The position numbers and the translations under genes are program-made. The notes under the pieces are model-generated. The model searched no databases. It was not told the origin of the DNA and saw only the letters and a program-made list of their open reading frames with translations. Below, piece by piece: positions 1,974 through 8,481 of a DNA stretch of 17,723 nucleotides (position 1 is the first letter of the stretch; every line of letters begins with the position of its first letter). Source of the DNA: Salpingoeca rosetta (lineage: Eukaryota; Protista; Choanoflagellata); contig JAWQFM010000019.1 of the NCBI GenBank assembly GCA_033442325.1, positions 1,098,338-1,116,060 of the forward strand, written 5' to 3'.

Positions 1974-4900
1974 ATGGCACAGACCATATCCGACATGTAC
2001 GCATCGTCATCCCGTCGCGGGTCCCAACAGCAGCTGCTACCGCCATCTGCAGATGGGGGAACAGCAGCAGCACTGCTCTCCAGCAACACATCGCCAACGT
2101 CGTCCCCCGCCCGCTCACGCCGCGTGTCGGGCATGGCGGGCACCGGTGTGGACGGCAGCAGCCGTGATGAGCCGCACCAACGTGACGACGCGTTGTCTGA
2201 CGTGGAGGATGATGGCTCAGATGCAGACGACAACGACGGCGCTGCGCAGGAGGAGGGCGGATACGGCTCATTCTCAGCAACAGATACCGTACCTTCCGCA
2301 ACCAGGTGTGTGTATTGTGTGTGTGTGTGTGTGTGTGTGTGTGTGTGTGTGTGTGTGTGTGTGTGTGTGTGTGTGTGTGTGTGTTGTGTGTGTGTGTGAG
2401 TTTTGTGTTGTATTGTGTGTGCGTGCGTGCGTGCGTGCGTGCGTGCGTGAGTACAATCGCTTGCAAACACTTGTTTGTGAAACGTGTTGAATGCACTGCT
2501 GTCATTCCCCCCCCCCTTCATCCTTTGTCATCCACCGGACTGCTCACACCATTGTGCCGCCGCTGCAGTGAAAACTTTTCCCTCGGGCCGCGCGACAGCT
2601 TGCACCGCGTGTCCATCAAGATGCTGCGGAAAATGAGTGCGTGTAGTTGACGTGTACCCCTGACCCAGCCAACGCATGCTTGAACGATTTTGGCTCATTC
2701 AAAACACGTGAACACAAAACGCACACAGGTGTGAATATACACACCAATGCTGACACACACACACACACACACACACACACACAATCGCTCACTCTTACAC
2801 ACTCGCTCACTCTTACATCCACTCATGCAATCACACACATACACGTGAATGCACACGTGCGTGTGCGTGTGCAGAGGACATGCCAGCGGGTCCCGCGTGG
2901 ATGGGCCACGTTGATGCCAGTCCGCGCCGCCGGAGCACTTTCGCTGCACTCTCCTCTGTTGCCGCAAGCTTCAGGCGCAAGACAACAACAGATGCTGACT
3001 CCCCAAACCAGGTGTGTGTGCGTGTTGTGTGTGTGTGTGTGCGTGTTGTGTGTGTGTGTGCGTGTTGTGTGTGTGTGTGTGTTGTGTGTGCATGCACTTA
3101 AATAATGTCAGTGTGCACAACCTTGTACAAACCCTCCAATCCAATCCAATCCAATCCAACCCACCCACCCATCGTCCATGTCTGCAGTACATCCTGAGCG
3201 TGGTGTACCAGGGCCGCTGCACGCACCATCTCATTGCCCGGGAGCGCGGCGGCCAGCCATTCTCCATCAACAAGCGCCTCACACGCTGCAAATCCCTGCA
3301 GTCCCTCGTGTACATGCTCGGTGAGTCACACACGCACACAGCGCGCGTGTATGTGTGTGTTTGTGGTTGTGTGTGGTTGTGTGTGTGCGCATGTGTGTTT
3401 GTGGTTGTGTATGTGTACGTGTGCGTTTGTGTGTGTGCGTGTGTGTGCGTGTGTGTGTGGTTGTGTGGTTGCGTGTGGTTGTGTGTGCATGAGAATGATG
3501 AGCGTGCGAGGACAGCGTCCAGTGAACTGCCTCGTGCTCACAACCTTGTCTTCCTCTGCTCACTTCATGTATGTGTGTGCATCATTGTCGATTACAGCGT
3601 TGACCAAAGACGAGCGATGGCCTGTCCACCTCAAGCACCCCGTCGCTCCAATCGAGGTCCGCACTGTGTGTGTGTGTGTGTGTGTGTGTATGTGTGCGTG
3701 TGTTATTTGATTGTGTCATCACCTGAGCGTCACCTCTCCATGTGTCTTGCGCCTGTTACACGATACAATGCCGTTGCTCCACCATTTCCCATGTGTAATG
3801 CACCTGCATGTGTGTACTGCGCCACCAACGCCACCTGCTGCGATGGATTCAGGATCCGGCCGAGGTGCTGGTGGAAGGACGAATGCTCTTCAGCTCAAAC
3901 AACAACGACGCCGCCCTTTACGTACGCAATTGTGTCGTCTGCCTATCCATCTACCATTATGTGTCGGGTTTGGAGTTGATGACAGTGTTGATGTTCATGC
4001 CGTGATGACCACTCTCTCGTGCGCAATTGATACTCGCAACACACACACACACACATACTCACATACTCACACAACACACAACACACAACACACATACTCA
4101 CACATGCTAACACACACATACAACACACACACAACACACACACACACAACACACACACACACAACACAAAACACAACACAACACACACGCACAAACACAC
4201 ACATACACACGCGCGCACATGCCGCCCCTTCCTCCTTGCGTAGTGCTACAACAAGGCGATTGCGACGGTGCAGCGCCTGATGGCGATGTTCCCCCACAAG
4301 GAGAGCGATTACGAGTACGAGCTTGCCATGGCATATGACCTCAAGGCAACGGTGCTGTTCAGCAAGCGCAAATATCGTGAGGCCGCAGACGCAGCCTACG
4401 CCGCAACTACGCTCGCACCAGGTTGGTCGATTGTATGTGTGCATCCGTGTGCGTATGCGCGCGTGTGCGTATGCGTGTGTGTGTGTGTGTGTGTCTGTGT
4501 GTGTGTGTGTCTCTCTCTGTGTGTGTTTAAGCATCCTTCCTCACTCGCACATACTCACTCACACATACTCACTCACACATACTCACTCACACATACTCAC
4601 TCGCACTTTCACACACACACACACATTCACACACACGCACATCCTCTCGCGTATGCAGAGTGGTGGAAGCCCCACTTCTCGCGTGGGCTGGCGCTGCGAC
4701 AGGCGCGAGCCTTTGATGAAGCTGTTACAGATTTTCAGCGCGCCCACGACCTGCTGCCCAACGGAGACGTGAAGGCAGAGCAGTGTCTCACTGCCATTCG
4801 TGACACCAACACACTCCGGGACCAGACGCACCGAGAAATCTCAAAACAGAAGATGACGGACATTGAATACGTGCGCAAGAACACTGCCGACAACAAGGCC

Positions 4901-7900: not shown

Positions 7901-8481
7901 CTTTGAGGATGCCGTGGATTTTCTCACGCGCCGCAAAGTGCCCATTGTGTTTACACAGCGCTTCCACGAGCGCCACAAGCAAGTGGCGCAGTGGCTTCGT
8001 GACCTCCAAGTCACCGTGGCTGCAGGTTGGTTTGTGTGTACGTGTGTATGGATGTGTACGGGTGCAGGTGCTTGTTTTGTTGTTCTACGAGTGCATATGT
8101 CATAAACACACACACACTCATACAACCCACTCGCACACTCACACACACACACACTCATACAACCCACTCGCACACTCACACACATACTCTCATACAACCC
8201 ACTCGCACACTCACACACACACACACTCTCATACAACCCACTCGCGCACTCACACACACTCACTCATACAACCCACTCGCACACTCACACACACTCACAC
8301 ACAATCACACACAATCACTCTCATTCACACCGCAACACCCCCCCCCTTCAAATCATGCACAGACCCCAAGGGAGAGAACCCATTGTGCTCACTCAGGGCG
8401 CAGCAAGAAGGAGAGGAAAGCATGCTTGTGGACAAGCACGAAGGCCAGCACAACGGCTTCATCCTCTTCGCCCCAACATGA
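1974..8481 (+). CDS. Multi-exon gene: low-complexity N-terminus + degenerate SH2 + TPR repeats + MSS51/ZMYND15-like C-terminal domain (~799 aa)
   Basis: Exons, all GT..AG and phase-consistent: 1974-2305, 2569-2636, 2875-3011, 3188-3320, 3598-3656, 3853-3921, 4244-4421, 4659-4912, 5260-5601, 5832-5882, 6068-6169, 6557-6643, 6852-6986, 7369-7522, 7846-8025, 8363-8481 (TGA 8479-8481). Total 2400 nt, open throughout. The start is uncertain because the frame stays open upstream of ATG 1974 back to ~1797. Confidence 0.8.
2875..3656 (+). other. SH2-like domain (exons 2875-3011, 3188-3320, 3598-3656)
   Basis: PAWMGHV...SPNQ|YILSVVYQGRCTHHLIARERGGQPFSINKRLTRCKSLQSLVYML|ALTKDERWPVHLKHP resembles the SH2 betaC-betaD-alphaB-betaG pattern (Y-x-LSV....V-x-H-x-x-I ... 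SL-x-x-LV ... L-x-x-P). The N-terminal half lacks a clean FLVRES motif. Confidence 0.72.
3853..4800 (+). other. Three TPR motifs (exons 3853-3921, 4244-4421, 4659-~4800)
   Basis: AEVLVEGRMLFSSNNNDAALY|CYNKAI; AMAYDLKATVLFSKRKYREAADAAYAATTLAP|E; WKPHFSRGLALRQARAFDEAVTDFQRAHDLLP show the TPR consensus spacing (G/A8, A20, Y/F24, A27, P32). Confidence 0.85.
5140..5248. repeat. Intronic (CAT)n followed by (CAC)n trinucleotide microsatellite
   Basis: Seen directly; lies in intron 4913-5259 just before the acceptor. Confidence 0.95.
6238..6301. repeat. Intronic octamer tandem repeat (CGGTTGAT)x8
   Basis: Eight perfect 8-bp units in intron 6170-6556. Confidence 0.95.
7075..7246. repeat. Long intronic (GT)n microsatellite degenerating into GTGG variants
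   Basis: Seen directly; representative of the many (GT)n/(CA)n tracts across the window. Confidence 0.95.
8108..8300. repeat. Intronic minisatellite, five ~35-39 bp units with core CTCATACAACCCACTCGCACACTCACAC
   Basis: The core ATACAACCCACTCGC recurs at about 8120, 8157, 8192, 8231 and 8266, separated by CA tracts of variable length. Confidence 0.85.

Follow-up and report, generated by a model that had tools for sequence, protein, structure and literature searches.

Yeast Mss51 is a mitochondrial activator of COX1 translation and human MSS51 is likewise mitochondrial and affects muscle metabolism (PMC4664537), whereas ZMYND15 is a nuclear, histone deacetylase-dependent repressor that is required in spermiogenesis, and truncations inside its MSS51 C-terminal domain have been reported in infertile men (PMC12766463). 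Among the choanoflagellates, M. brevicollis has 123 SH2 proteins in which SH2 is combined with 53 other domains (PMC4342544). In this study, we describe the gene for the hypothetical protein PTSG_12590 of the choanoflagellate Salpingoeca rosetta, which lies in a 17,723-nucleotide stretch of contig JAWQFM010000019.1 (hereafter the window). We give a probability of roughly 60% to the reading in which PTSG_12590 is one multidomain protein of at least 799 amino acids, with a disordered N-terminus, a degenerate SH2 domain, three tetratricopeptide repeats (TPRs), a linker and an MSS51_C domain at residues 525-799, and acts as a docking scaffold with a pseudo-methyltransferase module.

Gene structure, orthologues and architecture

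The gene occupies positions 1974-8481 of the window on the + strand in 16 exons. Rebuilt from the raw sequence, every intron is GT...AG, and the coding total of 2400 nucleotides gives 799 codons plus a stop with no internal stop. The whole-codon translation of each exon is an exact, ordered substring of PTSG_12590, with one-residue gaps only at split codons, and therefore the continuous 16-exon frame that an earlier note had read from the letters of the window is correct and identical to the existing annotation (P0151, 799 amino acids; XP_004990978.1, EGD77139.1, UniRef100_F2UIU0); the gene model is not new. GenBank GL832976.1 (assembly GCA_000188695.1) is base-identical to the window across the gene and its upstream region, an assembly gap included. 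The coding pattern, with GC content at third codon positions far above that at second positions, is present in 13 of the 16 exons; exons 1, 3 and 9 are flat in GC across codon positions and correspond to disordered or variable segments. A search of the genome for paralogues found none, and the gene is single-copy. The exons encode the following segments:

1974-2305, + strand: exon 1, residues 1-111, a low-complexity, poorly conserved N-terminal region with flat GC, exact to residues 1-110 of PTSG_12590
2569-2636, 2875-3011, 3188-3320 and 3598-3656, + strand: exons 2-5, residues 111-243, degenerate SH2-like domain
3853-3921, 4244-4421 and 4659-4912, + strand: exons 6-8, residues 244-410, three TPRs, then helices
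5260-5601, + strand: exon 9, residues 411-524, a conserved motif FGPH(I/M)SDEGIWYILRKRELC, then a variable, indel-rich linker; exact to PTSG_12590
5832-5882, 6068-6169, 6557-6643, 6852-6986, 7369-7522, 7846-8025 and 8363-8481, + strand: exons 10-16, residues 525-799, MSS51_C, with the stop codon at 8479-8481

Pfam searches were made on single exons, and full-length domain tests on the annotated protein. Exons 1 and 9 gave no Pfam family in the single-exon scan, and the indels of the linker part of exon 9 are visible in an alignment of five orthologues. This five-way alignment comprises PTSG_12590, P0001 and P0153 from Tara, P0093 from S. infusionum and P0154 from Barroeca monosierra; the first orthologue, P0001, was found with exon 8 against a 50%-identity representative library, and that of B. 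monosierra by cluster look-up. P0153 is an uninterrupted 948-amino-acid open reading frame (ORF) on a 2981-nucleotide contig (L023; Logan, run ERR1719235), and P0001 is an uninterrupted ORF of 751 amino acids on a 2534-nucleotide contig (L001; Logan, run ERR1719171) that is a 5'-truncated copy of the same transcript. P0093 is a complete Trinity/TransDecoder ORF of 800 amino acids, and P0154 is a gene model of 779 amino acids.

All 15 exon junctions fall in collinear sequence of this alignment, most of them gap-free, including junction 5/6 and both flanks of exon 9. Both places about which doubt had been voiced stand up: the residues across 3656/3853 are VAPIE|DPAEV in the window and VAPVEDPAEV and VSGIEDPCEL in orthologues derived from transcripts, and the stretch 4912-6068 contains two exons (5260-5601 and 5832-5882) collinear with the orthologues. 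The same architecture, for which a search of choanoflagellate transcriptomes had been advised, is present in the Tara contigs and in the S. infusionum Trinity ORF, and at least three choanoflagellate lineages besides that of S. rosetta share it (four lineages in all by the searches made). Word searches returned relatives only in S. rosetta, the Tara species and S. infusionum, and none in M. brevicollis, at a sensitivity too low to prove absence.

All three domains of PTSG_12590 are of known kinds. As the earlier note had it, an SH2-like domain, TPRs and MSS51_C stand in one gene. A MYND finger is lacking: Pfam zf-MYND and zf-Mss51 have no match at E ≤ 10 in PTSG_12590, and none at E ≤ 1 in P0153, P0154 or P0093. 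The C-terminal 275 residues resemble MSS51/ZMYND17 and ZMYND15 in that they match the MSS51_C profile, with a feature score of 0.92 and a template modelling (TM) score of 0.72-0.74 in the ESM Atlas; PTSG_12590 differs from these proteins in its marginal Pfam score and in that the SH2-like domain and the TPRs precede MSS51_C in place of MYND or zf-Mss51. A literature search found nothing on PTSG_12590, on MSS51_C together with SH2 or TPR, or on MSS51_C as a methyltransferase-like fold; in that search the architecture was undescribed, as the earlier note had it, although its gene model had already been annotated. The combination is an unusual, lineage-restricted case of domain shuffling. New SH2 partners are to be expected in choanoflagellates, where SH2 domains as a rule have lineage-specific partners; in M. 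brevicollis SH2 combines with 53 other domains (PMC4342544). As a separate observation, residues ~760-800 of the S. infusionum protein form a Cys-rich tail (...CRLCLNGVVNCCIVKCAGDDCFIGGTCHL...) that is not in the other orthologues and has no Pfam zinc finger at E ≤ 1.

The C-terminal domain

The MSS51_C domain named in the earlier note is borne out by Pfam (PF20179) at 28.3 bits against a cut-off of 27 (E 1.7e-6; residues 597-754, positions 2-163 of the 185 in the profile) and by matches of features and structure in the Atlas. Among the orthologues, the B. monosierra protein scores 28.8 bits, P0153 falls short of the cut-off with 19.0 bits, and P0093 has no match at E ≤ 1. No single exon gave MSS51_C in the Pfam scans, to which we attach little weight since the domain is spread over seven exons (the SH2-like domain over four); a six-frame genome scan with PF20179 also gave nothing, the domain being split over exons and the controls likewise giving no match. 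By ESM Atlas features, the nearest neighbours of residues 525-799 are MSS51_C clusters (score 0.92, 21 of 30 matches), and the Atlas model of the same residues matches four MSS51_C clusters, mostly with zf-MYND or zf-Mss51, at TM 0.72-0.74 (by query) and a fifth, MSS51_C-only cluster at 0.65.

The next Atlas structure matches are bacterial class I methyltransferases at TM 0.56-0.59. An AlphaFold2 model of the C-terminal 360 residues of an orthologue has an alternating beta-alpha core with a predicted local distance difference test (pLDDT) of 60-78. Searched with Foldseek against the PDB, this model gave 117 matches at E ≤ 1e-3 (best E 1.5e-5), and all those listed are methyltransferases except PaaA (5ff5). 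VIA-align against 48,161 chains returned Z scores of 9.2-10.7 over 150-175 aligned residues at a root-mean-square deviation of ~3.5-4.3 Å (more in a few rows); class I methyltransferases make up nearly all of the matches, and the top rank is a GRAS domain. PDB profile searches, which for PTSG_12590 returned TPR chains only, found no solved MSS51_C structure. Where the earlier note had spoken of a poorly understood effector, the fold at least can now be named, as MSS51_C models as a class I S-adenosylmethionine (SAM)-methyltransferase-like Rossmann domain.

The likeness to class I SAM methyltransferases (CbiT, NNMT, COMT, METTL16, FAM86A) lies in the alternating beta-alpha, Rossmann-like core; the domain of PTSG_12590 differs from them in that it is 5-15% identical and has A-R-K-P with an invariant Arg in place of the SAM loop. 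After strand 1 the S. rosetta protein reads H-I-V-A-R-K-P-I, in which H620, A623, R624 and I627 are invariant. The glycine-rich motif I (GxGxG) is absent after this strand, where the consensus is H-(I/V)-(V/I)-A-R-(K/Q)-(P/R)-I, with no glycine in any of the five orthologues. Judged from these residues, the module is probably non-catalytic.

The SH2-like region and the TPR module

Residues 111-243 are, by profile comparison, a real but degenerate SH2 homologue, probably of SH2 fold. Pfam SH2 (PF00017) does not reach its gathering score, with 12.5 bits (E 0.16) against 21 bits at residues 176-221 of PTSG_12590 and 13.4 bits on exon 4 alone. The 55.4-Mb genome holds at least 131 six-frame SH2 matches, and the PTSG_12590 locus is not listed in that scan (131-133 matches). 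For a closer reference, 20 complete SH2 domains from the same genome were aligned and compared with the aligned orthologous regions. The hhalign probability was 95.9% (E 5e-9, score 49.2), against a maximum score of 18.0 and a maximum probability of 4.1% in 200 column-shuffled alignments; the confident part is the C-terminal half only, strand C - strand D - helix B (PNQYILSVVYQGRCTHHLIAR...CKSLQSLVY). A profile hidden Markov model of the 20 domains scored 25.8 bits in S. rosetta, and 23.2 and 19.8 bits in the two other orthologues compared, against a maximum of 8.1 bits for shuffled or reversed decoys (6863 of 9003 returned a score). In the Atlas, the seven distinct clusters nearest to the model of residues 105-245 are all SH2 proteins, at TM 0.49-0.55 and with a whole-protein pLDDT of 0.55. 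Because several of these structure alignments begin at residues 105-111, the modelled fold suggests that the invariant N113-F114..G117...L122.R124 makes up strand A plus helix A and that extra residues are inserted ahead of strand B. Profile-profile comparison with its controls thus supports the SH2-like domain of the earlier note, and the Pfam score does not.

The region shares with the canonical SH2 domain (PF00017) the alignable strand C/strand D/helix B half, a conserved strand-D His and SH2 proteins as Atlas neighbours; it differs from it by its score below the Pfam cut-off, its divergent N-terminal half and an insertion of ~30 residues. The residues at 167/168/169, after the invariant S165-F166, are RRK in S. 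rosetta, P0001 and P0153, SRC in B. monosierra and QLK in S. infusionum. No register of the five-way alignment gives an invariant Arg at FLVR position betaB5, although the register itself is uncertain, and the domain is like the atypical SH2 folds without FLVR arginine in this respect. Of the docking modes that the earlier note had left side by side, phosphotyrosine-type or phosphotyrosine-independent, the lack of an invariant Arg in the FLVR-equivalent strand makes phosphotyrosine binding by this degenerate SH2 doubtful.

The identification of the TPRs is solid, and the module spans residues 244 to about 380. TPR_1 (PF00515) scores 33.5 bits (cut-off 27.8) and TPR_2 (PF07719) 32.3 bits (cut-off 27) on PTSG_12590, and TPR_2 is found on exon 8 alone at E 6.8e-5. 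The PDB profile matches are three-TPR co-chaperone domains (HOP TPR1, CHIP, FKBP4, SGT, PP5), and the region aligns along HOP TPR1, SGT2 and FKBP4, in accord with the three repeats that had been predicted. It shares with the co-chaperone TPR domains (HOP TPR1, CHIP, SGT, FKBP52, PP5) the arrangement of three TPRs and a capping helix; it differs by insertions of 7 and 8 residues between TPR1 and TPR2 and by the loss of most of the carboxylate clamp. The clamp residues of HOP TPR1 are reportedly K8, N12, N43, K73 and R77, numbers attributed to Scheufler et al. 2000. In the alignment to HOP TPR1 (1elw_A) their equivalents are M/L, R, H or L, K, and T/S, respectively. Because only the equivalent of K73 is kept out of five, binding of Hsp70/Hsp90 EEVD tails by the PTSG_12590 TPRs would not be expected.

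The 5' end of the gene and other features of the window

Homology to P0153 does not stop at the annotated start codon. Residues 115-176 of P0153 match window positions 1896-2066 with 43.5% identity (E 3.9e-7, tblastn), which carries the homology 26 codons 5' of the annotated ATG; ...EKPRRSSMVQTLTDMYASS of P0153 lines up with ...ARPRRSSMAQTISDMYASS at the S. rosetta start. Upstream of this ATG its frame stays open over 59 codons, from 1797, and a C/A-rich tract there is followed by an AG at 1887-1888 that is a candidate acceptor. Three features of the region are relevant:

857-1622, no strand: assembly gap of 766 N, with its end 351 nucleotides 5' of the annotated ATG; also present in GL832976.1; likely site of missing 5' exon(s)
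1896-1973, + strand: in-frame stretch upstream of the ATG, homologous to P0153 (PRENVVTGRPRGAS..ARPRRSS), probable unannotated coding sequence
425-856, + strand: near-copy of a gene segment, 433 bp and 98.4% identical to 4123-4554 (end of intron 6, exon 7, start of intron 7) by blastn self-comparison; it abuts the gap

Because the homology continues upstream of the ATG towards the 766-N gap, the annotated S. rosetta start codon is probably internal and the model 5'-truncated by the gap. P0153 and P0093 start with an additional, canonical SH2 domain, YLHG(S/T)ISR.EAE.LL...FL(L/V)RVR, which scores 35.2 and 39.1 bits in Pfam over profile positions 2-47, and a PDB profile search with that of P0093 returned the SYK SH2. 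Neither the window nor its surroundings contain a counterpart of the N-terminal SH2 of P0153, whose only matches in the genome are paralogous SH2 domains on other contigs. The full S. rosetta protein would begin with a further canonical SH2 encoded by exon(s) in the gap at 857-1622, and the order would be SH2, SH2-like, TPR and MSS51_C. This extra SH2 of the orthologues (L023:69-503, residues 1-145 of P0153; residues 43-89 of P0093) covers the first 45-47 of 77 Pfam positions only and is followed by low complexity; this SH2 may be shortened, or else may have diverged strongly in its C-terminal half. As for the copy at 425-856, it is probably an assembly artefact, either a mis-placed contig end or a haplotype copy, and a true local duplication is less likely.

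Most introns contain long TG/CA microsatellites (e.g. 2310-2400, 3020-3090, 4050-4200 and 7060-7240), which in a mechanical ORF list show up as long but spurious Cys-Val or His-Thr ORFs on either strand. In intron 8, at 5139-5249, lies a long tract of (CAT)n followed by (CAC)n, one frame of which would give poly-His; its reading as coding was rejected, as it is missing from the annotation and from all orthologues. Likewise rejected was a MYND-like reading of a Cys-containing frame at ~5250-5400, which belongs to exon 9 read out of frame and lacks the spacing of a MYND finger. Intron 11 holds a tandem array of about 7 copies of the 8-mer GGTTGATC at ~6243-6300. Downstream, from 8816 onward (L022:8843-10508), the neighbouring gene on the same strand encodes a 1472-amino-acid product with a ZER1-like_2nd (PF22964) match.

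Discussion

It seems that PTSG_12590 would act as a docking scaffold in the cytosol. Where present, the canonical SH2 at the N-terminus would give phosphotyrosine-dependent recruitment, and the degenerate SH2 together with the clamp-less TPRs would supply phosphotyrosine-independent protein contacts, while MSS51_C would be a non-catalytic binding or regulatory module, that is, a pseudo-methyltransferase, an atypical enzyme being less likely. In animals, fungi and plants, it would instead be a MYND or Mss51 zinc finger that aims the MSS51_C module. By analogy, because family members differ in where they work (Mss51 and MSS51 in mitochondria, ZMYND15 as a repressor), the site of action of MSS51_C does not appear to be fixed, which suggests that the partner module, MYND elsewhere and SH2 plus TPR here, does the aiming.

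Several points weigh against this reading. The support for a single transcript comes from the existing annotation and from relatives. The MSS51_C score of the S. rosetta protein is only 1.3 bits over its cut-off, with P0153 below the cut-off and P0093 unmatched at E ≤ 1, and the C-terminal AlphaFold2 model is of moderate confidence and was built on an orthologue, not on the S. rosetta protein. The support for the SH2 fold consists of profile comparison and a low-confidence Atlas model; AlphaFold2, run on the SH2-like part with a three-species alignment from which canonical SH2 sequences were left out to avoid a circular test, gave a pLDDT of 42.9, too low for the model to be of use, although it has three strands and a C-terminal helix in SH2 order. 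The B. monosierra model starts at the equivalent Met, so that the N-terminal SH2 could be truly absent in S. rosetta. Lastly, an acidic residue after strand 2 of the MSS51_C domain is conserved (D654; E in B. monosierra) and a DSGRQAD..IQADFEDA stretch after strand 4 is invariant, and the two could mark a working active site.

These last residues bear on the alternative that keeps most ground, in which MSS51_C is an active, atypical SAM-dependent methyltransferase brought by SH2 and TPR to phosphotyrosine-marked or other partners, so that its activity would be gated by signalling. The invariant D707-S708...Q711.D713..IQADFEDA lies where methyltransferases contact substrate and cofactor, the acidic residue after strand 2 would fit an active site, and almost all fold matches are class I methyltransferases (Foldseek 1.5e-5; VIA Z 9.2-10.7; Atlas TM 0.56-0.59). 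However, a GxGxG-type loop is missing and has an invariant Arg in its place, the literature search turned up no MSS51, ZMYND15 or ZMYND17 protein with reported methyltransferase activity, and a shared fold does not show function; the top of the VIA ranking is taken by GRAS domains, which share the fold but are not known to be enzymes. From the models, we regard an active enzyme as unlikely, and the scaffold with a pseudo-methyltransferase module as the better account of the domain.

It has also to be asked whether the protein could act at or in mitochondria, in respiratory-chain biogenesis or metabolism, with SH2 and TPR linking it to cytosolic signalling. Membership of the MSS51_C family and the mitochondrial location of yeast Mss51 and human MSS51 speak for this (PMC4664537), but ZMYND15 is a nuclear repressor, so that MSS51_C does not dictate a mitochondrial site (PMC12766463). 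No evidence of a mitochondrial or nuclear role of PTSG_12590 was found, the N-terminus, where a presequence would lie, being probably incomplete. SH2 and TPR docking modules are typically cytosolic. A mitochondrial role, drawn as it is by analogy, would in our estimate be somewhat less probable than an enzymatic one, and a cytosolic scaffold is preferred.

That the SH2-like region is not homologous to SH2, its likeness being due to chance or to convergence in a small beta-rich domain, appears very improbable. It would account for the Pfam E of 0.16 on the whole protein with no match in P0001, for the locus missing from the six-frame SH2 scan, for the low pLDDT of the AlphaFold2 model and for a confident alignment limited to the C-terminal half; against this stand an hhalign score of 49.2 (95.9%) compared with a shuffle maximum of 18.0, 19.8-25.8 bits in three orthologues compared with a decoy maximum of 8.1, seven of seven nearest distinct Atlas structure clusters being SH2 proteins, and the canonical SH2 that the orthologues also bear, which places the family in an SH2 context. 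A merged gene model, in which a predictor joined two or three neighbouring genes (SH2-like, TPR and MSS51_C), could draw on the weak coding statistics of exons 3 and 9 and on the junctions 3656/3853 and 4912/5260, for which the transcript support is that of relatives, but such a fused-gene artefact is very unlikely, the faintest of these alternatives, because all junctions are collinear, most of them gap-free, and the whole collinear protein stands in one uninterrupted ORF in two independent metatranscriptome contigs and one Trinity transcript of relatives.

A further proposal is that MSS51_C is a conserved effector with an interchangeable aiming module, the MYND or Mss51 finger in animals, fungi and plants and SH2 plus TPR in some choanoflagellates, and that here it is a working, atypical enzyme of methyltransferase fold recruited by phosphotyrosine signalling. 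We hold this for a long shot; if true, it would directly link tyrosine-kinase signalling to methylation, or to regulation of the MSS51 type, in the group most closely related to animals. The analysis is most useful for its reading of MSS51_C as methyltransferase-like and for pointing to a gene model that is likely truncated. The C-terminal domain of MSS51, ZMYND17 and ZMYND15 is tied to muscle metabolism and male fertility, and a methyltransferase-like fold without the SAM loop offers a concrete biochemical hypothesis for it, pseudo-enzyme versus atypical enzyme. As a natural variant in which SH2 and TPR replace the MYND finger, PTSG_12590 may allow MSS51_C to be studied apart from MYND, and genome-editing methods have been reported for S. 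rosetta. For choanoflagellates, it adds one more lineage-specific partner to SH2 and flags a gene model that is probably truncated by an assembly gap.

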